Part shown: in pieces, positions 3,196-19,600 of the stretch
Position numbering within the stretch: the stretch's first letter is position 1
Layout of the letters: each line of letters opens with the position of its first letter
From: Marsupella aquatica
Taxonomy: Eukaryota > Plantae > Marchantiophyta
Direction of reading: 5' to 3'
Length of the DNA: 64,000 bases
Assembly (NCBI GenBank): GCA_973895155.1
Contig: OZ316897.1
Span: 6,089,327 to 6,153,326 of the forward strand
Position numbers and translations under genes: made by a program
The notes under the pieces: model-generated
What the model was told of the DNA's origin: nothing
Databases searched by the model: none
What the model saw: the letters and a program-made list of their open reading frames with translations, nothing else

Positions 3196-4199
3196 GAAAA
3201 AACCGACATCCAAGAGAATGGTCATCCAACTCTAGGCCAGAAGCCCTACAGGCAAGACAGTCATACTGGCAACTGTGCACACACCCTTGGGCCCTAATTT
3301 GTGGCAGGTCATGTACGAGAGACAAAAATACCAAGGATGTTGGGAAGGGTGGAGAAGCAGGTACAGGGCGGCTGTAGTTGTTCCTGGCAACAACTGGGTA
3401 CTCAAAGTACCATGCAGACTGGGCTGGAAGGATCCCAAGTCTGACATACTCAAGGCGCAACATCTCTGCCTTGCGTGCAAGCTGCACATGTTCAGCATTG
3501 CGGGTCCTCACCATAAGTGTTGCTTTTGTGGAGTGTCGTGTGTTCACATCCTCTGATAAGCACCTTCGATCAGCAAGGTGAGCAGGAGCTGTACTTGCCT
3601 CACCAACAGCAACCAACCTTAAATTATCAGTTCCCACTCACTATGTCATTCCATTGGTTCCAGCTAGGGGTCATAGTGTAAACATAGCATGAAACACTCC
3701 TAATCAACTTGCTTACAAACTACAATATCCAGAAAGAGTGAAAGTCTCACCCTCCAGTGAGCAGCAGAGAGGTAGTTCACTGGATGTGTTGATGTGCAGT
3801 TAAACCTCCACTATTGCTTACTTCCAGTGTATGCTGCTCAGAAGAAGACATATTAGTAGCAGCAAATTGCAAATAATGGCCATAAGCAAACCGTGAGAGT
3901 TTGCAGAATGCTACGACAACTATTCATCCATCACAACAGTGCTCCACAGGAATGAAACCAAGCAAAATTTGGTGACCTCGACCAATGACAAGGCCAATGT
4001 AGTTCACAATCCTTGACCGATCAGGATATGGATTGGAATTACAATTAGTCAACTCTTCTTCTTTGTTTTCTAACTCTAGGGGAAATGAGCATGACCAGGG
4101 AATTCTCTGAGAAATAGAAGTGCACAGGGAAAATGAAATTGGCTCATTCAGCTGCGCAAGATGGACCATTGCAGCATACTTGGACAATTGTTCCGCAAT

Positions 4200-5250
4200 A
4201 CTTTTAGATCTAAACAAGGATGTAGTACCATTGATTACCTTCTTGCCTCACCTACCTCTGCCACTAGAGTGGTTCTCTTTGGAGCTTTGGTGAAACCAGT
4301 CATTCTTTATGGAGCACCAATTTGGGGAGCAGGTGTGTCTAAATCTGGGTGGCAACAGATTGAGGGGCTGCAAAAGCTATTTCTTGAGATGGAGCTTGGG
4401 ATCAAGTCACAAACCCCATATGCACTTACACTTGCAGAGGCAGGCTTGTTTCCTTTGGAGGTGGAGGCACTCTTCCACACACTCAAATACATCATGCGTG
4501 TAAGAGAGTTGGAGGAAAACAGATTTCCTTTTCATGCCTTGCGCTCATCTTCAGCTAAAGGGTGGTATGCAGATGTGTGCAGGTGGGCCCATGCTTGGGA
4601 TTTTCCTGAACATGAATGGCCAACACACCCAACCAAGCTAAGAGCAAAACTTGAGCAAAAGGCTTTGCACAAACTTTGGCATGAACCTAGCCCACGACAG
4701 CAATACTACATGAGAGATGTGAACCCCATGAAGAAATATCGAGAACAAGAATACTTATCTAGCACTATCTCAGTACAACTTAGACAACTTATTGCTCAGT
4801 ATAGACTAAGCTCACACCACCTTGAAGTAGAACAAGGGAGATGGAAGGATATTGACAGGAAAAAGAGGGTTTGTCAACTATGTGATAGCTCTAGTATAGA
4901 GAATGAATATCATGTATTCATTGCTTGCAAGTTTTATGAGGGGGTTAGGATGGCATCTCAAATCTTGGTGAAAGATTTGTATGCATTGTTTGGTCTGCCC
5001 CCTCAGCAACTTGGAAGGTATATCTTTGCGGTGGATAGGGAAAGGAGAATAGGTTTGGAAAATCTTTCAGGGCTCTCTAGGTCCATAGGGCTCTCTAGGT
5101 CCATAGTTTCTTTGAGGACATAGTTGTCCTCTTCTGAGCAATCTCTTTTGGTTGCTCTTTTCTTTGATTGCATTGTACTTTACTTTTTGTGGCACCTCCT
5201 TTGACTTTCATGGTCCCGGAGCTTATAATACATTACCATTACCATTACCA
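4200..5250 (+). mobile_element. RTE-X-like LINE copy, 5'-truncated, with a 1635-bp internal deletion and (CATTAC)3 tail
   Basis: 4200-4274 matches the EN region (about 43383-43309 reversed) and is joined to the post-RT region (41673 downward). 3' UTR and tail at 5231-5250; 18-bp duplication gggctctctaggtccata. Confidence 0.95.
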
Positions 5251-7120: not shown

Positions 7121-7373
7121 CTACTCATATTTACCAATCACTAATACCAATCCCGTAATTTCTTACTAGGGAAATAATGACTATGTAGTCATTAAGTCTT
7201 TAAAAATGACTTGTAGTAATTTATTATTACTACAAGATAATCTGCGTTTACTGATGTGTGTAACATCTCTTACATACTCAGTGTTTACCTGGGTGCATGA
7301 GAAAGTAACTTCTGGATGTGAAGTAACTACTTCAAAATATCAGTGTTTATGCATGAAGTAGTCAACTATAATT

Positions 7374-7816
7374 TGTCGTGCAAGAGTGCATGGTTATCAT
7401 CGCCCATCACCATGCCCTGTGCACGCCCGCTAGGATATTATGGTAGTTTAGGTTCATCATTTAGACGCCATATATGCAAGCTATAATAGATATGCTTGGT
7501 GTTCTCTAAGCAAGCATTCTCCTCTTAGTAGCACTTTCGGCAATGTTCTTGTAGCAAACCCTGGTTGTTCTTGAAGCAAATAGTCTTTGTTAGGAGCACT
7601 CCAGAGCCAACATACTTAGATTGCTCATTGCACATTCACTTCAGTTCTTCTTGAGTCTTAGCTTTAGCATTGCAAGCACTTGGCTATGGCAGTACACTCC
7701 ATGGCACCTCCACACATTTGAGGATTGGCTATGACTCTTTAGATGCTCCCAACACATCATGGCATGCTGCTGGTTTTCTTATGTACTACTCACTCTACAT
7801 GCTACATACGTATTAC
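7374..7816 (+). repeat. Repeat A1 (443 bp)
   Basis: Matches 16022-16464 with one substitution seen (aacac/agcac). Confidence 0.97.
7641..7656 (+). promoter_or_regulatory. Predicted TSS (Inr TCAGTT, +1 about 7643) and self-primer
   Basis: agttcttcttgagt (7643-7656) is the exact reverse complement of 7815-7828. Confidence 0.65.
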
Positions 7817-7828
7817 TCAAGAAGAACT
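7817..7828 (+). promoter_or_regulatory. Self-priming primer-binding site
   Basis: tcaagaagaact starts exactly at the end of A1, is complementary to 7643-7654, and lacks the TGG start of a tRNA PBS. Confidence 0.75.
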
Positions 7829-8446
7829 ATCTTGACGGGATTACATCCGCCGATGTGGCAATCTGGTGATTGCTTCATCAATCAGATTTGGTTTTGAGTG
7901 ATAATTGTAGAGTTCACTAAAGGTGAAAGACGTTCATGAATAGAGGGAGGTCGACTTGTACAGGGACAGGTCGAACACAAACTTTCAAGTTATCGTCAGT
8001 TCTCAAAACGCCATTTTGAGCACATCCGTGATCTATTCTGGTTGTAACTCTTCAACCGTTTGACGAGAGTAGGAGCTTTTAGCATGGTTGGAAAGCTCTC
8101 ATCGAGGCGTGCAAGATCGATATAAAGAACTCCGAAAACGAAGCCCTATCAAGTGAGATACAGTCGCCGACATTTTGATTTCACCGAAATGCAATTTCGG
8201 GACAATTTCGCGAATTTCCAACTTTGATTTCTACTGTTTGCGTCAACGACTTGGGGCATGTAAGGGCTCATTAGGAGCGTCTGTGAGTGCTTCATCTCCT
8301 CATGATTATCTCACATATCGTTATCTATTACCAAGAGAGATATGTGTTGAAGAGTTGGAACACCTTCATGCAGATTTTAGGGATTTGGTCTCTATTTTGA
8401 GGTTTAGAGGAAGACTGATTGATCTCTTTGAGCATGTCACATCAGG

Positions 8447-9775
8447 ATGAGCTCAGGTGACTCTAACAGGGATCCATGGCGGCCATATCATCTCCGAAGT
8501 GACCCACGCCCATTAGAGACTATCCCTCTCAAATCATCTAGATCATTTAGAAGGAGACACACCCAGAATACTTCTTCTGGATCTGTCGGGGCAGGAAGCT
8601 CACATCAGGTGATTCCAACAACTACATCATATCAGGTTCCTCAATTGTCTATTCAACCACAATCAGGCCTGTACACGCCTCTTTCAGCTCCAACCAGCAC
8701 ATTCCCAGCTCCGCTCTCGACATCAACAATTCCACCAGTGTACGGGATGGAGGCTAGCAGCTCATCCAGCAAAATCGGGAAGTTTAGTGGTCGGCCTGGC
8801 ACCATTTCTCTACGGGAATTCAAAGCAGCATTTTACACAGTTGTGTATGAGTTGGAGCTCAAGTACTTGAGCCACTACACTGCTGCCTTTGCATTCAAAC
8901 AATTGGCAAGGTATGTGCACCATGAGGCATTGGACGTGTACCAGCAGCACTCGAGGCGGTTATTGGGTGTCACTCAAACCCCAAATCCTGCTTACGCTGC
9001 TGCCATAGCCGGTGCCCACCAGACAGCACTACAAGCTGCCATTGCAGCGCATGCTGCTGCTGCCGCTTCTTCATCTAGTAGTGCACCTTCACCAGCACCC
9101 ACTACAGTGGTATTGAGTCCAGCTGAGCTTGCTCTAGCTACTACAGGCATCTCTTCCACTGTTGATACACCAGTGTATCTTGATCCAGTGGATGAGTTCT
9201 TTCAAATTCTTGAACAGGAATTTCCAGTGAAGAGCTCAGAGAAGATAATCCAGCTTGCTACATTCATGCGGCAGAAGGATGAAACGTTGAAGATGATGTA
9301 CCAACGATTGCTCAAGTTGAAGGAGGATACCAACAGTATCACAGACCAAGAGGCTGCAAATCATTATCTTGATGCGCTTGAGAGTAACCCTTCACTCCAT
9401 TTGCAGGTGCTACATCAGGTCTTTGCACAACATGGGGATTCTTACAATCTTCTTCAAGTGTACAACATTGCAGAGAAGCTTGAGCTTGCCCATGCTCATT
9501 ACCAGGCCAGTCACTCACGTCGTGGGCCACGAACCAGGCCTTTCGTTCCTACCCCGACATCTGGTAGGTCAATAGTGCAACCCCAACGAGTTAAGCATGC
9601 CCATTCTGCACCTATGCTTGTCCCTTCTTGCAATTACTGTGGGAATCCGGATCATAAGGCTAATGAATGTGATGTTCCTCCGGATGAGCTCTACTGTGAC
9701 TTTTGTGGGAAGTCTGGACATTTGGAACCTGTATGTTTCTCCAAGTTTCCAGGGCGAAAGAACTTGAGGCACTAG
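8447..9775 (+). CDS. gag: Gag with two CCHC zinc knuckles
   Basis: CNYCGNPDHKANEC and CDFCGKSGHLEPVC; KFSG and F.RQKDETL..YQRL gag-like motifs. The frame continues past TAG 9773-9775 into ORF 9935. Confidence 0.85.
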   Translation: MSSGDSNRDPWRPYHLRSDPRPLETIPLKSSRSFRRRHTQNTSSGSVGAGSSHQVIPTTTSYQVPQLSIQPQSGLYTPLSAPTSTFPAPLSTSTIPPVYGMEASSSSSKIGKFSGRPGTISLREFKAAFYTVVYELELKYLSHYTAAFAFKQLARYVHHEALDVYQQHSRRLLGVTQTPNPAYAAAIAGAHQTALQAAIAAHAAAAASSSSSAPSPAPTTVVLSPAELALATTGISSTVDTPVYLDPVDEFFQILEQEFPVKSSEKIIQLATFMRQKDETLKMMYQRLLKLKEDTNSITDQEAANHYLDALESNPSLHLQVLHQVFAQHGDSYNLLQVYNIAEKLELAHAHYQASHSRRGPRTRPFVPTPTSGRSIVQPQRVKHAHSAPMLVPSCNYCGNPDHKANECDVPPDELYCDFCGKSGHLEPVCFSKFPGRKNLRH

Positions 9776-11300
9776 CCAACTCCCACCATTGCCCCTTCTT
9801 CCGTCGCCCAGTCTAAGAGGAGTGTTGTCGCTGCCCCTTCATCATCCAACAAACCTGCTGGTTTCAACAAGAACGCCAAGAAGAAGGAGTACCAGAAAGC
9901 TCAGAAGGAGGTTCTTCAAGCTCAAGCTACTCAGGTGCAAGAATTGACCAGCGAGTTGGAGGCAGTCCGCGCTCAATTGGCATCCCTCCAAGGCAAATCA
10001 GTACAGCCAGCAGGTCATGCTCAACCTGTGGCTGGTGCTCCTGCAAGTAGCAGTACTACACCGCTGCCACGGTCCTTCTACAACCTCCCTTATGATGCCA
10101 TGGCTGGAGAGTACGTTGTTGGTCCCACTCTCACATCTGGTCTTACTAGTGAATTCTCCAATTCATTTTTCCCCTCATACTTTGCACACCAGCAAGCTAG
10201 TGTGGCCACCCGTGCAGCTACCAATCGGAGGGTAGTCCAAACTGATGGCCTTGCCTCTGGATCTAGTCCTATCACACAATCCAGGGGTGCCAGAGCTACC
10301 ATACCACAATCTTTTCGACCACTTACTCCAACCTCAGAGGCTACCTTGTTGGCAAGGGGAGGTAGGAATGACATAGCTTCTTTGCCAACCGGTGCCTCAA
10401 ATCTGAATTTAGTAGGGGGGCATGTACAGCAACCAGATGCATCACCAAAAGCTGATCACATGGTACCATCTCCATTTCATATTTCAGGCATGGCACACCA
10501 ATTTCTCACTACTCCATTGTTTAGTTGCCAAGACCTAGAGTTGAATGCTAGAGATGTGATTACCTTGCTGGAGGGCACACTGAACTCTACGTCAAGTCCC
10601 TCATCAACTACTGTGATGCCTGTCATGGAGGTCCAACATCAGGTTTTGATTGGACCGTCCCCTTTGTTACATGCTGAACATAGTATGCATTTGTCACTTC
10701 CTAGTTCTAGTTCTAGTTCTAGTGCTACGATGAGTATTGATTCCATGGCTAGGTCTACATCTAAGTGTTCAGGGAATTCTCAGTCCCTCTTGGACATGCT
10801 CATCAGTGACAAGGTTGTGGATACTAATGTCCTACACAAGATGTCTCACAATGTGCCCAAGATTGTTCCTAGTGACAGGACTTCAGTCTCCACTAGTGTT
10901 GCCATTGTTGATAATAGGGCTGCAGCGGTACAGGTGGAGGGTCACATTCCTAAGGTGGTTATGCTAGATACTGGAGCTCAGCCTGTCATACTTGGAATTC
11001 AATTTGCCAAACAGTTGGGGCTAGTTGACTCCAAATTGCAAAAATCAGCATGGTACATAGTGGCACCGTGGAGGAGGTACTAGGTGAGAGTGCTCAATTG
11101 CTCACTCTCTCTTTCAATGAAGGTACAGATCAGGAACTCCAATTCCAGGTCAGATGTCTGGTCACCAATGCCACAAGCTATGATGTGCTCAGGCCAAGAG
11201 GCTTTATTCCCGCCAGGATTTACCATTGATAACTGGTTTGAGCATGCATACTATCGTGCTGATTGGCAAACTGATGGCATGTGCTTGGGCTACATTCCAC
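9776..11300 (+). pseudogene. Gag-pol linker and aspartic protease (frameshifted)
   Basis: VMLDTGAQPVILG at about 10958-10996; second motif YDVL-GQEAL reached across apparent frameshifts at about 11058 and 11191. Confidence 0.8.
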
Positions 11301-11617
11301 TGGATTTACATGGGGAGCATACCCCTAGTGCTCACTACTGTGTGTTGCAAGAGGTGCATACAGTCTCCTATGTCAACCATTCATTGCACGATTGGATTGA
11401 AGAAGATGAAGAGGAGTTGGCTACCACACAAGCCAATGAGAGCTTACTGGCTGCACCTACTGAGTTAGCCCCTCAACCTGAGGTTGTCCAACGGCTAAGA
11501 GCTGCCCATGGACCATTGACTATTGCTCTACAGCAATGTGAGGGCCTACAAAGCCATGGCCAGCCCATCTTCCCAGTCTTGAGCACACTAATCACTTGGA
11601 CACCTCCTCAAGATGGT

Positions 11618-12560
11618 GTTACCTTGCTGGAGCTTTTTGGTGGCATTTCTACAGGCCTAGAGGGGGTTGCAGTCTGGCATGATGGTGAAGAGGTACATCT
11701 ATGTGGACACTGACCCATATGCAAGGAAGGTGGCTCAATCACGGATGCTGGAATTTTCAGCTAGGTTCCCACAACAGTTTCCACCTAGTGCATGGAAGGC
11801 AAGCTTCACTCTCTTTCCTCCTGATGTTCAGTTGCTACAACAGAAACACATTGAGCTACTTGGTTCCTTGGACCTCATCATTGCTGGCTGGGAATGCCAA
11901 GGCTTCTCTGTTGCAGGTTCTGGAGCTGGTTTGAGTGATCCCCGGTCAGCACTCTTCATGGACCTGGTACAAATACTCAATTGGGCCCAGGCTCTTTACC
12001 CTGCTGTTGGTTATGTCATTGAGAACACACCCTCTCAATTTGCCCAGCGAAAGAACATCCAAGAGGATTTTCTTCTAGTCCAACGCTATCTTGGTCCACC
12101 GTTCTTAATTGATGCAGCCCAATGTGGGTCTTATGCGCATCGTCTGCGTAATTTCTGGACCAATATTGCACCGGTTAGCTTACTACAATTGGCTCTAAAA
12201 CATACAGTCAGGGACCCTACATTACAGGTGCACCAGATTTTGGATGCTAATAGCTCTTGTCAGCCCGTCACTCGGCAAGAGAGAGCACCTTGGTACCCTG
12301 CTAACACCATTGGGGAGCCAAGAGGTGCTTGGCCTACCTTTGTTTCATTTCCTGGCGCCCATGCCTTCCAAGGGGATGGACCAGGGCTGGTCTACCGTCA
12401 CGCTTTGGATACATGGGATGAGCCAAGCCCGGAGGAGCGAGAGCGAGCTATGGGCTTCCAAACTGGCACTACTGGTCATGTTAAAGTGACTAGGCTAGAG
12501 CGGAATTCTCTTCTTGGCAGAGTCATGGATCTTAATGCTTTAACATGGCTTTTGGTTACT
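11618..12560 (+). pseudogene. DNMT3-like C5 cytosine methyltransferase domain inside pol (frameshift about 11663)
   Basis: Motif I LELFGGISTGLE; II YIYVDTD; IV IAGWECQGFS (catalytic Cys); VI VIENT; VIII AHRLRNFWTN; IX EERERAMGF; X RNSLLGR. In frame with RT from 11667. Confidence 0.9.
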
Positions 12561-12849
12561 TGTATTCTTTTCCAGATGCATACTGTTCCTACTATGGGTG
12601 ACCCAGCCTCTCGCCTTAATGAAGTTCTTACCTGGCACCCTGATGAAGTACATTTACCCATCCTCTCCACTCTACATTTCACTCCTAGTGTTGGGGGGGG
12701 AGAGGTACCCTGTAATGTGACTGAAATTTCAAAATCAGAGCATGGCATGGACCAGATCACACCAGGCAAAGAGGAAAGCACATCAGGTTCTTCTAGTACA
12801 CCCACTAGCTCTACGCCATGCGTTGCAAATTTCCAGTTTGTGATGGGTA

Positions 12850-14250
12850 ATCAGTTGAGTAAGAAGCAACGGGATCAGGTACTGAATTTGCTGTTGAGCT
12901 ATGAAGATGTGTTTGCTTTCTCAATGAGAGACTTGGGCAAGTGCAAGGTGATGCAATTCTCCATTGAGCTGACCGATGAGAGACCTATTTATCGGCGGAG
13001 ACACCGGTTGAGCAAGCATGAGTGGCAGCTGGTGGATGAGAGATGCAAAGAGCTTTACGAAGCAGGTCTGATCCAGCCCTCCAACTCTGACTTTGCAGCG
13101 GCTACAGTGATGCCAGCAAAGAAAGATTCTAGTGGGCTATGGACAGAGAAGAGGATGTGTGGGGACTACAGGCCACTCAATCTGGTCACACCTCAAGACA
13201 GGTACCCCATGCCTATCGCTGAAGAGCTCTTTGACTCCATTGGAGATTCTGATATCTTTACCCTTGTAGACTTGAGGCAAGGCTTCAACCAGATCATTAT
13301 TCGGGCTGAGGACCGTAAGAAGACAGCTTTTCATGGGAGCAATCGATTGTGGGAATGGCTGGTGATGCCATTTGGACTGAAGAATGCACCCGTCTTCTTT
13401 CAACGGGTGATGGATCAAGTACTAGAAGGTGCTGATTTCCTAAAATGCTATATTGATGATGTGTTAGTTCATAGCAAGGGTTTTGAGCAACACTTATTAC
13501 ATCTTGAAGAGTTGTTCAGGAGGCTGAGAAATGTTAATATGAAGATCCATCCCAAGAAGTGTGAGTTTGCTGTTACCTCAGTGGTTTACCTTGGGCATCG
13601 AATCATTCCAAATGGCACTATGGCTCATTGGGCTAAAGTGGTGTCTATTCTTGAGATGCCCAAGCCTACTGATACTCACACTTTGCGAAGCTTCATTGGT
13701 CTATGTAATTACTACAGAATTTACATCCAGGACTTTAGCATCATTGCTCACCCATTGTACATGTTGCTTAAGAAGGATGTTACCTGGAAATGGACTGAAG
13801 ACACTCAGGTGGCATTTGAAACTTTGAAGGGAAAGTTATCAAGTTACCCTGTTCTCAGAAGGCCTGATTTCAGCAAAACATTCATTTTGCATACAGATTG
13901 GAGTGCTCTAGGTATTGGTACCATTCTGGGTCAATTTGATGGGGACGGGCAGGAGTATGTCATTGCTTATGCGTCTAGGAGCAATAACAAGGCTGAGAGC
14001 AACTACTCCTCTTATGAAGGCAAATGCTTGCCTGTTGTGTGGGCTGTCATACATTTCAGACCCTACCTGTATGACACTAAGTTCATGCTCTTTACCGATC
14101 ACCAGCCACTAAAGTGGTTGATGACTAATGATAAGCTTACTGGCAAGCTAGCTCGTTGGGCCCTCATTTTGCAAGAATATGAGTTTGAAGTTATTCATAG
14201 ACCTGGAATTACTCACCAGAATGCTGACACCATGTCTCGCAGTCCTTTGA
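12850..14250 (+). CDS. pol: Reverse transcriptase and RNase H
   Basis: RMCGDYRPLN, MPFGLKNAP, YIDD, YLGH; RNase H FILHTDWS..YASR..FTDHQPL..NADTMSR. Confidence 0.97.
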
Positions 14251-14432
14251 TCACTTCAACAGATTTTTCAGATGCACGACAAGATTTTGATCATGCTAGT
14301 CCTAGCTCTACACTTGGGGCCTCTGCCTATCTTGCCTTGCTTTGTTGCAGCGTTGTTGACCAACCAATTGTGGACATCTGGGAGGATTTGGACACTCTGC
14401 ATTTCTTGCAGCACAGGTAGTACCCACTAGGC

Positions 14433-15836
14433 ATGACCACTACTCAAAGGGATTGGATACAACAACGGTCTAAGCGTTACATGTGGAAGGGAGATCACCT
14501 AGTCCGCTGTTTGCCACAAGGGGAGAGAGTGGTTCCACCAATTGCTGATAGGGCTGGCTTGGTCAGAAAAGTACATTCTGAACTTGGGCATTTTGGAATC
14601 AAGTGTACTTATAGTTTGATGGCTCCTCACTACCATTGGAAGGGGATGCATGCTCAGATTCGGGATATCATAGCTAGGTGTGAACAGTGTGACAGAGTAA
14701 GAACCTCATTCTCCTCTTGACAGCCTATACTTCATCCACTCCCTATTCAGGGATTGTTTTACCGCTGGTCTTGTGATTTAGCTGGAGAATTACCTTTGAC
14801 ATCCAGGGGTAACCTCTCTATAATGATCATGATTGAGCACTTTTCTAAGTGGATTGAATTGGTTGCCTTGCCTGATAAGAGTTCACATAGCACTAGCCAA
14901 GCTTTTCTCCAGCAAGTGCTTAGCAGGTTTGGGGCTTGTGCAGAGTGCCTCACTGACCAGGGCTCTGAATTTAGAGGAGAATTTCAGGACCTCCTTGACC
15001 ATGCACTCATTGATCATCGTAGAACTTCAAGGGATCATCCTCAAGCGGATGGTCTAGCTGAGTGGATGGTACAGACCTGCAAACGAGGATTGCGGAAAAT
15101 ATGCCTCACCAAGAACAAGAAAGATTGGGACTTGGCACTGCCTTACATTGCCATGGGGTACCGCATGTCCAACCATGCCTCCTTGTCCAACTTCTCTCCT
15201 TATTTTCTACTTTTTGGTCGGCATCCAGTTCCTCCATCTTCTATTGCTTCTCAAATGCTTCAGGTGGTGGACTTGGACTCCACGGAAACCTGGTCTACTA
15301 TCATATCAGAGAGGGCTGCCTTGTTCCGTAGAGTCATGCCTATGGCTATGGACAACCTAGCAATTGCCCAACATCGTGATACACTCAGATATGCGCACAC
15401 ACTGGGAGGGAGCTTCAGGCCCAAGGTGAGGCAGTTTGATGTGGGTGATTTTGTTTACCTTCAGCGCCAACCTAGTGACACATTGGATACCTCCACCAGT
15501 CACATTATTCTCAGGGTTAAGTGCATCTATCCTTCAGGTGTGTTGGAGTTACAGGGAGCAGATGGTCGTACCCTCAAAGATCATGCTAAGAATTGTGCCC
15601 CTTGTCAATTGCCTAACTTGGACCCTACCATTGTGACTTCTACTTGGATTCCTCCGGTGGATTATCCCTGTAAGGTGTGTCACAGGATTGATGATGCTGA
15701 CCAGATGTTGTTGTGTGACCATTGCAACGGTGGTTACCATCTCTTTTGTTTGCGACCTGAGCTTCCACAAGTTCCGGAAGGGCTATGGTTCTGTCCTTCT
15801 TGTTCTCCTTCATCAAGCTCATCCTCAGCCCGTTGA
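14433..15836 (+). pseudogene. DDE integrase (H2C2 plus core) with C-terminal PHD finger; in-frame stop 14718-14720
   Basis: HSELGH...CEQC; WSCDLAG, LTDQGSEF, DGLAE; PHD CKVC..CDHC..H..C..WFCPSC at 15669-15803. Same frame as RT, separated by TAG 14418. Confidence 0.93.
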
Positions 15837-15856
15837 TCATTTCCATGCTCAGGTCT

Positions 15857-15864
15857 GGGGGGGG
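15857..15864 (+). promoter_or_regulatory. Polypurine tract (G8) directly before repeat B1
   Basis: tctggggggggatacagg; B1 starts at 15865. Confidence 0.75.
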
Positions 15865-16019
15865 ATACAGGGGTTTACTTTCATGCCCCAACATTTCTTC
15901 ATCTTGGTGTTAATGGACAACCATGTATCATCTTTCTGGTTTTCTATTTTGTTGTGTTACTTGGATGCATATGATACATGTCTCGATATCTTATGCTACC
16001 GACTCTATATGTCACGACA
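15865..16019 (+). repeat. Repeat B1 (155 bp)
   Basis: Matches 16465-16619 with one substitution (cacgaca/catgaca). Confidence 0.97.
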
Positions 16020-16028
16020 GCTGTCGTG
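16013..16028. other. Perfect 16-bp palindrome CACGACA-GC-TGTCGTG (element right end, GC, element left end)
   Basis: Read directly at the B1/A2 junction. Confidence 0.95.
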
Positions 16029-16619
16029 CAAGAGTGCATGGTTATCATCGCCCATCACCATGCCCTGTGCACGCCCGCTAGGATATTATGGTAGTTTAGG
16101 TTCATCATTTAGACGCCATATATGCAAGCTATAATAGATATGCTTGGTGTTCTCTAAGCAAGCATTCTCCTCTTAGTAGCACTTTCGGCAATGTTCTTGT
16201 AGCAAACCCTGGTTGTTCTTGAAGCAAATAGTCTTTGTTAGGAGCACTCCAGAGCCAACATACTTAGATTGCTCATTGCACATTCACTTCAGTTCTTCTT
16301 GAGTCTTAGCTTTAGCATTGCAAGCACTTGGCTATGGCAGTACACTCCATGGCACCTCCACACATTTGAGGATTGGCTATGACTCTTTAGATGCTCCCAG
16401 CACATCATGGCATGCTGCTGGTTTTCTTATGTACTACTCACTCTACATGCTACATACGTATTACATACAGGGGTTTACTTTCATGCCCCAACATTTCTTC
16501 ATCTTGGTGTTAATGGACAACCATGTATCATCTTTCTGGTTTTCTATTTTGTTGTGTTACTTGGATGCATATGATACATGTCTCGATATCTTATGCTACC
16601 GACTCTATATGTCATGACA
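16022..16619 (+). repeat. Repeats A2 (16022-16464) and B2 (16465-16619)
   Basis: Direct copies of A1 and B1, fused without spacer (tattac|atacag). Confidence 0.97.
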
Positions 16620-19600
16620 AATTACCAGAAGCAATGACTTGTAAAATTAGTGATTGCTTATCACTGATTTGTCAATGTTTAGGGATGGTGGTCAATTATT
16701 GACTATACCCTAAATTTGGTTGAATTTCTTCCTAGTGTTTCGCCCCGTCCAGTTCCCACCAAGTTTTCTCCATGGCAGAATCAGCTCTATCGGCAAGAAT
16801 TTGTGTGATTGCCGACTCCACCGAGTGCAAACTGGGTGGTCAATGAGCTGGTGCAATGGGCAAAGGTGACCTTTGGGAGCTGAGCAAGGTATGCAGCTAA
16901 GCAATATTGTTCAAGGTGTTACTAGCTGCTATTGTGGAAGTAGAGCCGTGGATGTGTTCAAGACAGAGGACAAGCATTGTATTGGATTGGAAATATTGGA
17001 AGAGGCCAAAGATGAAGAAAGTGGATTACTAGCCCGTGTGTAGATTTTTCCGAGACATTGGATGTTGAACGACACATTGTTGTGCTAGGTATTGTGACCT
17101 TGAAAACTTGTAAGTAAGCATGAAATAGTAATGCTAATAGATAGACAACTTTTGGATCTGGGTGGAGATCTGGACTTTTCTTGAGCGCACTGCTTGTTTT
17201 GCCAAAAACTTGTTTGATTAAGGGTTGTTTCTAATGTCAAGTCTTAGTTCTGGGAAGTAAGAAGCTTATGACTTTGTCAAACTCTACGTTCAAAGGACTC
17301 CACTTCGTTGCATCCCAAATGAGTGGGGGCTTTCCTCGCAACAAATCCTTCAACAGAATAGAGCTTTTGCTCTCAAGTTTTGCCAGGAAATTGACAAGTT
17401 GATCCTGCAAACAAGGTTGTTGCATGCATTCTATTAATGGGGCAGGGGGTCCGCTTGTCAACTTTCCGCTTCTTGCTGCCGCGGCGTCCCATTTTGTTGC
17501 ATATCCGGACATTCCTTTGTATCACACAACGCTGCAATTTCCACTGCAGGTGAATGATCTTCAGTGCATTGGAGAGGGGGTTGGACGTGTTGGGCCTGGA
17601 GAGCGCTGTGACCTCTTGTGTTGAGAAGATCTTCAGCAATTCTTATGGATTGATGCTTCTTCCGTATGCTTTGCCATATGCAGTGGTAGGGTTCAGTGCT
17701 TTGTCGTCACTTGTACGATGACTTACTTGCTTTGCGATAGCAAAGCTGTTGGAGAGTCATAAAGGATGTTGTGTTGCTTAGTGATGATGTGTTTGCTGTG
17801 ACGATGTTGCTCAACGCCACTCAGTGACGATGTGTTTGTTGTGTCTATGCAAGTCTCATGCGGCGAGATCATGACTATGATCTTAAGAACGGATGAGTTC
17901 TCACTCATGACTTTCTCTGAACTCTTACGGTACACAAAAGCATAGTACTTTGTCGCCTTTCCTAGACAAGGATATCCACAGCCATTTCTTCAGCCATCTC
18001 ATCTCTTTTCCTCCCTCCGCCACATTTTGGCTCAACTGCTGATGCCTACCATAATGTTTATCAAGGTGGCTAGGGGTGCTGCAGTAGCAACCCCACACAG
18101 GCGGCAGTGTTAAACCCTTGTCTGTCACTTGAATTTTCTTGCATAAACCTTTGACCTATCACTTGGAATTTAGTTGGATTCCTGGGAAATAGTTTTTTAT
18201 TAATTAATTGGGCCGCGAAAAGCCCCACGGCAAGGGCAGGCAATCAGCCAAAGAGAGCGGAAGCAGCGACAGGCAGACAATAGTCATTACAAATCACAGG
18301 GCCAAACATGTCTCATGGACCCTCAGGGGCCACACCCCTGGGGCCAGCCACGGTGTCCAAGGCCACTCCCAGACCAGCAGAACAGAAATACAACAGAGAC
18401 CGACATATCAAAAATACAGTAGCGACCAGAGGGTCGACAACTAATCTTTAATGGCTAGAGAGGCGGCCACAGCCTCGCCTGAGCCAATCCCTATGCTGAC
18501 CATCAAGCCATGCTTTGGCATTAAGGAGGCGAGAGAGTTTCCTGCCAGGAGGAGACCGGCGACTCACAGCATATAGGTGATCAGCAGTCTCAAAAAGGAC
18601 AAGTCCAAGATCAAATACCCTGCAACCCCGTTAAGGTGAGCTGAACGAGCTTGGGAGAGCGCACAGGCGGCACTCTCGGGGGCTCATTTTTTGGGTGCTT
18701 TTTCCATCTTTATCGACCTTTGTCGACAAATGCTGGTGTCGACGAGCCAAGATCGTTGAGAGGTTGGCAGGAGCACATTTCCCCGGTGGTTTAAGGGTTT
18801 TTGGAACTCCAATGCTTGCCCTATAGTGAAACTGGCCCGGGCACGACTTAGGGCGTAGAGTGGGACTGCTCTGGATTTTGGCTCAGATTGTGTTCGGACC
18901 CGGATCGACAGGCCTCCCGCGCTGCTCCCTAACGGAGGTTAGACTGGATGCGGGTGCGTTTCGTCGTCCCGTTTGGGCCTATCGCTTCCTCCTTTGACTT
19001 GGGATGCTGTACCTCGATCTAAGATTATTACTCCTGGGGAATACTCTGGAATCGCGGTGTTGCATGCCATCTCGGCGTCTGGCGCGTACTCAACCTCAGC
19101 TGCACTCTTTTCGTCCCTTGAAGCGAGCATTGGTGAGAACTCTGTAGGCGGTGGATCTCTCTGTATTGGACTGGGGAGGCGCAAGGATTTGGCGGTTGGG
19201 ACACCTTGGGCATAAATGTCGGGAGATTGGAACTATCTGGTAGAGGTCACCACGTTCTTCAAGTAGCAAATGCGGGGATAGAAGCAGAGAGATAAGGACA
19301 TTGTGGATGAATCTGAACCACTGGGACGTGAGTCGGACGCGGCTGCTTCAACTTTGGACAGCGGACTCTAGACTGCAGAGTGTCATCTCAAGATTGACGG
19401 AGGAAGAGGGAACCCTCATCAATGGATTAAGCGACTACGGTTGGGCAGAGCGACTCATGCTGGAGCAGCGAGTGAACATTCTTTACTTGTCAAGAGGGCG
19501 TGGACTGCCATCGACTCTGCTGGTTGCGGCCGAACGGGGTGCAGCAGTGGGCGGAGGGGTGACCTGCTGCTTGGTGCGACTTACTGTCACTGAATTTGGC

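Follow-up and report, generated by a model that had tools for sequence, protein, structure and literature searches.

Split direct repeats in a Gypsy-DNMT3 retrotransposon of the liverwort Marsupella aquatica and the probable use of joined cDNA ends in its integration

Retroviruses and long terminal repeat (LTR) retrotransposons are taught to integrate a linear complementary DNA (cDNA) by its termini, and circles carrying two LTRs (2-LTR circles) are regarded as dead ends. Joined ends are the substrate in the IS3 family (IS911-type) of bacterial DNA transposons, where a DDE enzyme acts on abutted ends with a short spacer in a circular intermediate; there is no reverse transcription and the spacer stems from flanking DNA. 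A joined-end intermediate is also implied by the repeat order A1-internal-B1-A2-B2 of Ngaro, PAT-like, TOC1 and SymbioDIRS-Dnmt3 elements, which encode a tyrosine recombinase and insert without target duplication. Here we describe an element with this repeat order from Marsupella aquatica (assembly GCA_973895155.1, contig OZ316897.1, positions 6,089,327-6,153,326 of the forward strand). The whole stretch of 64,000 nucleotides (nt) is referred to as the window, and all element coordinates are window positions, with 1 being its first letter. In contrast to the tyrosine-recombinase elements, the window element (7374-16619) has a DDE integrase, TG..CA ends, a target duplication of 4 base pairs (bp), a primer-binding site and a polypurine tract.

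The closest described system is KnitGypsy-Dnmt3 of Klebsormidium nitens, for which de Mendoza et al. 2018 (PMC5890265) indicate a DIRS-type repeat arrangement with Gypsy domains in the legend of Fig. 4c. The layout takes up one sentence of that legend; the register of primer site and polypurine tract, the palindrome, target duplications and the mechanism are not discussed. Our literature search found the layout only there, and no publication that explains its origin; Gypsy-DNMT3 is mentioned in a 2026 preprint (10.64898/2026.05.21.726589), which says nothing on the repeats. The preliminary description of the window knew of no Gypsy element described with this architecture, which has to be corrected in view of this legend. 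Both elements carry a DNMT3-like domain in a Gypsy Pol and show the order A-coding-B-A-B, and in the K. nitens contig a G-run, B, CACGACA-GC-TGTC and A follow each other as they do in the window. They differ in that the host is a liverwort here and that the repeat sequences are unrelated. The window element is thus a member of a published family that lacks a mechanistic explanation, and its architecture is real and family-wide.

The layout A1(443)-internal-B1(155)-GC-A2(443)-B2(155), with TG..CA ends and an AATT duplication, had been claimed before and is borne out to the base (repeats, duplications and coding regions are given for the + strand). The left 4-bp duplication AATT (7370-7373) is followed by A1 (7374-7816), which starts with TGTCGTG, forms the integrated left end and comprises, in this order, the 3′ part of U3, R and U5. 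B1 (15865-16019), the 5′ part of U3, ends with CACGACA and is separated by a lone GC (16020-16021) from A2 (16022-16464). B2 (16465-16619) forms the integrated right end, terminates with CATGACA and is followed by the right 4-bp duplication AATT (16620-16623). The repeats differ by one mismatch in A (442/443 identical positions) and one in B (1/155), the latter being a C>T change that turned CACGACA into CATGACA in B2. Repeat boundaries are unambiguous, as the outside base differs between both copies of each repeat.

Because A starts with TGTCGTG and B ends with CACGACA, the 16 nt at 16013-16028 (CACGACAGCTGTCGTG) form a perfect palindrome without strand, CACGACA-GC-TGTCGTG, which consists of the B end, the 2-nt spacer and the A start and is referred to as the internal attachment palindrome. 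At the A2/B2 join (tattac/atacag, 16459-16470) the exact end of A1 is joined to the start of B1, the end of U5 being flush to the start of U3. Outside the element, the 64-kb window contains no further sequence similar to A, B or the interior. With 2 differences in 598 repeat positions (99.7% identity), the window copy is young, as judged from its repeats. The family is multi-copy in public runs of Marsupella aquatica. Contigs from four runs (two studies) contain the junction of B2 and flank, and those of three runs cross 16590-17000. Other family copies in the public runs break into unrelated flanks exactly at 16019 and 16022 and into the primer site exactly at 16464. In contigs from three runs, a variant of A within the family has GA in place of 44 nt at window positions 16106-16151.

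The primer-binding site (TCAAGAAGAACT, 7817-7828) adjoins the 3′ end of A1 and is complementary to a 12-nt segment inside A (AGTTCTTCTTGA, 7643-7654), which represents the predicted transcript start and self-primer. Such complementary pairs of about 12-15 nt show compensating changes in four lineages: apart from the window, the segment inside A and the site after A are AGTTTTTCTAGA and TCTAGAAAAACT in the metagenome lineage, AGTTCTGAAGTG and CACTTCAGAACT in Calypogeia fissa L003, and AGTCTTTCTTCAG and CTGAAGAAAGACT in C. fissa L004. In RNA that reaches from the self-primer segment to the primer site, both ends form a closing stem (z = -2.8 and -4.9), and the minimum-energy fold for the window pairs 7643-7654 with 7815-7828. 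In the metagenome lineage, TATAAAAG occurs about 30 nt upstream of the self-primer segment. As the self-primer lies inside A and the primer site follows A, transcription is predicted to start inside A and U5 to end at the end of A, a Tf1-type arrangement in which the 5′ end of the (predicted) transcript is complementary to the primer-binding site. For Tf1/sushi and Tcn1, pairing of the first ~12 transcript nt with the primer-binding site is described in PMC6317226, which cites Lin and Levin 1997. The window Pol is distantly similar to that of Tf2 (35% identity). Tf1/sushi and Tcn1 elements have conventional LTRs and a chromodomain, whereas the window element has permuted repeats, a PHD finger and a methyltransferase.

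On the other side of the internal region, the polypurine tract (ggtctgggggggg, 15852-15864) includes a run of 8 G (15857-15864) immediately before B1, and the same tract precedes B1 in related loci. As the G-run adjoins B, it places the start of U3 at the first base of B. With a primer site after A and a polypurine tract before B, the LTR defined by reverse transcription is B-NN-A (B-GC-A in the window, as had been proposed), with termini other than TG/CA. The integrated element is thus a circular permutation of its cDNA.

Within this B-NN-A LTR, the integrase-type recognition ends (..GACA and TGTC..) are juxtaposed, with 2 nt between them. This agrees with the initial proposal of integrase-type ends arranged as an internal palindrome: each of the 33 relatives that could be resolved has exactly 2 nt between the B end and the A start (L082 was read by eye, the other 32 by pattern match). 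These 2 nt are GC or one of its variants, mostly single-transition changes, and in resolvable copies the core GACA-NN-TGTC is kept or only transition-mutated. CACGACA-GC-TGTC is also found downstream of the G-run in L087, a relative with only 43% identity in Pol, and in the K. nitens contig, where the integrase-PHD region is 54% identical. Nicking after CA on both strands would result in two recessed CA-3′OH ends with 2-nt 5′ overhangs, which is a normal strand-transfer substrate. In the metagenome lineage the last ~30 nt of B (e.g. L001 14375-14405) contain two copies of ACGTCACGACA, about 11-19 nt apart, while the window B has a single copy; the paired copies could be subterminal integrase-binding repeats. 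We also considered whether B originated as a remnant of the 3′ portion of A, and dropped this idea because local alignment was no better than for shuffles.

An alignment of the integrase-PHD region provided 85 related loci, four from C. fissa, one from a JGI contig and 80 from bryophyte-associated JGI metagenome contigs; the K. nitens contig (L088, DF238545.1) is also among the comparison loci. The metagenome contigs (L005-L084; Ga0116226-31, Ga0209611, Ga0209208) are clearly bryophyte host DNA and such contigs are a usable source of plant transposon copies. In L001, a PPR-DYW editing-factor gene adjoins the element. A-like and B-like segments were mapped in all loci, and doubly assembled loci were removed before counting. 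Loci from Closterium (L085) and Sphagnum (L086) and two additional C. fissa loci (L089, which is heavily nested, and L090, which is without repeats) were uninformative.

In the deduplicated census, the integrase is followed by the G-run and B-NN-A-B in 38 loci and by the G-run and B, then unrelated DNA, in 27, while 13 loci are cut short or rearranged. The G-run adjoins B in every locus where a B was found after the integrase, and a single A adjoins the primer site in all 25 loci with a visible 5′ end. In no locus does a B occur upstream of the genes, so the census sample contains neither A-B-A-int-B (int denoting the internal region) nor AB-int-AB, the conventional arrangement that the preliminary description had named as speaking against its reading. 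Both ends are visible in 22 copies, of which 13 are A-int-B-A-B and 9 are A-int-B. Among the 22 are four young copies from long-read assemblies (window, L002, L003 and L004), all of the B-A-B form, the layout thus being present in long-read assemblies of C. fissa (L003, L004). The census shows that A-int-B-A-B is a family trait and not a one-off rearrangement.

Perfect 4-bp duplications flank nine A-int-B-A-B copies (GGTC, AGTG, CACC, ATGT, ATAA, CCTT, TGTG, TTTA, AATT), five A-int-B copies (CCAA, TTTT, GTAT, TCCC, AACT) and one solo A-B (CAAT). Overall, 15 duplications of differing sequence match at 4/4 positions, seven older copies match at 3/4 and two show no match. Independent copies with distinct 4-bp duplications had been predicted along with A-int-B copies and solo A-B, and all of these were found; a further predicted by-product, A-B-A-int-B, is absent from the 22 copies with both ends visible. 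L021 (2235, 11305) is an A-int-B copy without a 4-bp duplication as read. Its flanks become tcta/tcca when the two spacer nucleotides on each side (gc at the left end, ac at the right) are taken to be overhangs that stayed in place, and the copy may represent a rare insertion of this kind. The A-int-B and A-int-B-A-B classes are interleaved on the integrase tree and their terminal branch lengths are equal (p = 0.96). As the terminal branches of A-int-B copies are no longer than those of the other class, these copies seem to arise at or near integration; slow deletion of A-B from older A-int-B-A-B copies is not supported as their main source.

If the A/B join is a fusion of two cDNA ends, as had been claimed for the window, traces of end joining are expected there. 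The join is flush in the window and in 22 of 34 unique copies in total, while 12 show a change in length. Six copies have lost 2 nt at an AT/AT microhomology. Two copies have an additional T and one an additional TC; these match the bases with which the primer site begins, as would be left behind by a primer that was not fully removed. Single cases show an extra A, a loss of 4 nt and a loss of about 8 nt. With a background of 30 indels per 9844 nt in the A1/A2 and B1/B2 alignments, changes at a single site in 12 of 34 copies would hardly occur by chance (p about 1e-11). Inherited subfamily markers were rejected as an explanation, as the join variants are scattered over the integrase tree; each A/B join was thus made afresh. 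The join lies outside the predicted transcript. The pattern resembles that of retroviral circle junctions and, on the sequence evidence, supports a fusion of real cDNA termini. The end-joining scars at A/B and the absence of A-B-A-genes-B may be new results.

We consider it likely that the registers of reverse transcription and integration are offset in this Gypsy-DNMT3 element, that the cDNA termini become joined and that the DDE integrase cuts the internal palindrome. A cDNA with B-NN-A LTRs would have its termini joined, and the simplest way would be host end joining to a 2-LTR circle. In the LTR copy that adjoins the primer-binding site, the integrase would then nick both strands of the palindrome after CA, and the two 3′-recessed CA ends with their 2-nt 5′ overhangs would be inserted with a 4-bp stagger, which would give A-int-B-NN-A-B. 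As only this product would keep a downstream A with R, only this product would be copied again. Unit-length A-int-B insertions might come from the same machinery, through a 1-LTR circle, through the outer half-sites of linear cDNA or through immediate repeat-mediated repair, and would be dead on arrival.

This route has parallels in known systems. Integrase of prototype foamy virus (PFV) cleaves the palindromic LTR-LTR junction (PMC1180852), and the same is reported for that of human immunodeficiency virus type 1 (HIV-1; PMC1905944, PMC4372172). As proposed here, a retroviral-type integrase thus cuts a CA..TG palindrome on both strands, which results in two processed ends. In retroviruses, however, the palindrome comes about when the cDNA ends are joined, and this route is of minor importance or disputed, whereas in the window family the palindrome lies inside U3 and the joined ends persist as an internal scar; the joined-end route appears to be obligatory here for making replicable copies. 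With IS3-type transposition our proposal shares the DDE enzyme, the abutted ends and the short spacer.

Several points weigh against this reading. The joined intermediate is deduced from finished insertions, and circle-first, integrate-then-join and template-switch routes would all give the same product. A symmetric circle predicts A-B-A-int-B as often as A-int-B-A-B; since a 2-LTR circle has two identical palindromes and yet none of the 22 copies is A-B-A-int-B, an extra polarity has to be added that is unexplained so far. The class of A-int-B copies is large (27 versus 38). Both the transcript start (7643) and the poly(A) site (inside A) are predictions. Comparison copies are mostly from short-read metagenome assemblies, and at the window locus the whole of B-A-B is spanned by none of the short assembled contigs from public runs. 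The B-only class could in principle include collapsed assemblies; a divergence of 4-19% between B1 and B2 in copies that have both speaks against such collapse. Of the 2-LTR-circle mechanism as first proposed, the outline therefore stands with respect to registers, palindrome and fusion, while random cutting of either palindrome does not suffice, as A-B-A-int-B is absent. Candidate sources of polarity are a kinetic preference for the LTR that is duplex first, integration before joining with repeat-driven repair, and a one-sided template switch. With somewhat less confidence than for the offset itself, we lean towards an ancient integrase lineage, reaching from Klebsormidium to liverworts, that obligatorily integrates through the internal palindrome after cDNA end joining and with built-in polarity.

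An unlikely but serious alternative reverses the order of events. The integrase would cut the palindrome in linear cDNA and insert both halves, and host end joining would then close the cDNA termini as A/B. The same scars would be produced and, if the palindrome of the other LTR is used, long terminal homology in A would lead to single-strand annealing and thus to A-int-B. This could explain why A-B-A-int-B is missing and why A-int-B-A-B and A-int-B occur at close to 1:1 (38:27). It would also fit the terminal branches, which are equally long in both classes, and the cleavage of internal palindromes by tetrameric integrase in vitro (PMC1905944). However, a chromosome break would be needed at every insertion, and end joining should still give some A-B-A-int-B, of which none is seen.

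Alternatively, the A/B join could be made by reverse transcriptase itself, which we regard as improbable. The plus strand would jump end-to-end from the U5 terminus onto the completed U3 terminus and copy B up to the palindrome, so that only the right side is extended, and the integrase would use the first TGTC and the last GACA. The observed polarity would follow directly, since the left LTR is duplex first and only the late plus strand finds an acceptor, and the microhomology and the 1-2 extra bases at the join fit as well. On the other hand, the literature searched provided no precedent for LTR elements, the larger losses of 4 and about 8 nt at the join are more suggestive of end processing, and the scheme is purely inferential.

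Movement by a tyrosine recombinase acting in trans, as in DIRS, Ngaro or PAT-like elements, would make the DDE integrase irrelevant. It would account for a repeat layout like that of split-direct-repeat elements with tyrosine recombinase (PMC5890265, figure legend) and is nevertheless highly improbable. The defining traits of those elements, a tyrosine recombinase and insertion without target duplication, are both absent. Both the 4-bp duplications and the TG..CA ends are hallmarks of a DDE integrase, and the integrase sequence is conserved within the family (70-88% identity). Primer site and polypurine tract are in keeping with the usual reverse transcription of LTR elements. It had been noted that no tyrosine recombinase is visible, and indeed no ORF (open reading frame) of at least 80 amino acids in the window element or its relative L001 matches PF00589. 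Finally, the view that a conventional AB-LTR Gypsy element was rearranged in a single event, altered by nested insertion or misassembled, for which only the lack of a single contig or read across B-A-B at the window locus could be quoted, is refuted by the family census, with 38 independent loci in several hosts with different target duplications, the shared layout of long-read C. fissa L003 and L004, AB-int-AB found nowhere, and other copies in four public runs breaking at exactly the same bases.

It seems that the structure of the family makes sense only with joined termini as a productive intermediate and with an integrase that acts on the internal palindrome. Each insertion records its own end-joining event. 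The family is a tractable natural model in which the action of integrase on palindromic junctions can be studied, and a Gypsy element that looks like a DIRS element finds an explanation. The missing A-B-A-int-B class is a concrete problem for further work. If joined-end integration is indeed obligatory, this would be a natural counterpart of the long-disputed integration from joined LTRs, and the split-direct-repeat architecture would be a general outcome of joined-end intermediates, whatever the enzyme. In genomes of bryophytes and charophytes, LTR finders that require two TG..CA repeats and a duplication will probably overlook this family or set its boundaries wrongly.

The coding content identifies the element as a Ty3/Gypsy retrotransposon of the streptophyte Gypsy-DNMT3 family. 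The domain order on the + strand is gag-like, aspartyl protease (weak), methyltransferase-like, reverse transcriptase, RNase H, H2C2, rve core and PHD finger, and thus contains the order protease-reverse transcriptase-RNase H-integrase of Ty3/Gypsy elements (Metaviridae). A DDE integrase with short target duplications, found at 15 copies, is also typical for this group. Two identical TG..CA LTRs, with a primer site after the 5′ LTR and a polypurine tract before the 3′ LTR, do not occur; an intact TG..CA unit (A+B) is present in the integrated copy only at the 3′ side. Assignment to Gypsy-DNMT3 is based on the C5 methyltransferase domain inside Pol, the repeat order A-coding-B-A-B and the homology to the K. 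nitens element.

A gag-like ORF (8447-9775) has a Cys-His knuckle near the C-terminus of its translation and is without Pfam match; an exact-protein look-up for the window gag gave no record. The protease region (9935-11713) shows weak matches to aspartyl proteases, contains an in-frame stop (11081-11083) and is followed by a frameshift before the next ORF. The Pol ORF (11667-14420, 917 amino acids, stop at 14418-14420) codes for the C5 cytosine methyltransferase-like domain (PF00145), reverse transcriptase (PF00078) and RNase H (PF17917/PF17919). The PF00145 match (7.3e-08), which is also found in L001, spans only about 55 residues of the Pfam model; the methyltransferase-like domain (11667-12000) keeps the catalytic cysteine in an ..ECQGFS.. 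motif and also has an ..ENT.. motif. The H2C2 zinc-binding domain of the integrase (14433-14720; PF17921, 2.9e-15) is followed by an in-frame stop (14718-14720) and by the catalytic core with C-terminal PHD finger (14754-15836; PF00665, PF00628). The integrase is of DDE type with H2C2 and rve domains, D,D,35E is present in the translation, and structure matches of the core are Ty3 Gag-Pol (7q5b) and PFV integrase (3oyi). The PHD finger (15669-15803) resembles those of WSTF, CHD4 and ATXR5 (E down to 1e-15). Chromoviruses have a chromodomain at this place. The PHD finger is conserved in the relatives from K. nitens, C. fissa and the metagenomes. With three in-frame stops (11081, 14418, 14718) and a frameshift near 11700, the window copy is not autonomous, despite its 99.7% identical repeats.

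The nearest named proteins are from the liverwort C. fissa (86-88% identity), and K. nitens protein P0039 is 54% identical over the integrase-PHD region (E 3.8e-163). This is an old plant-lineage family, of which the window contains a young copy. Within the integrase region of the K. nitens contig (L088, 1-1581), there is a tandem duplication of 760 nt with 94% identity. In C. fissa L002 one B2 is followed by gctgt (13942-13950), which represents the spacer and the first three A bases, and a nearby inverted A-B (3807-4375, minus strand) has an extra AC at the A/B join and no matching duplication, which suggests rearranged or concatemer-derived copies. In C. fissa L089 (200-13400) a sequence of 470-615 nt occurs five times at 99% identity and has the appearance of a small mobile element of recent origin; one of its copies has inserted into B of a Gypsy-DNMT3 element.

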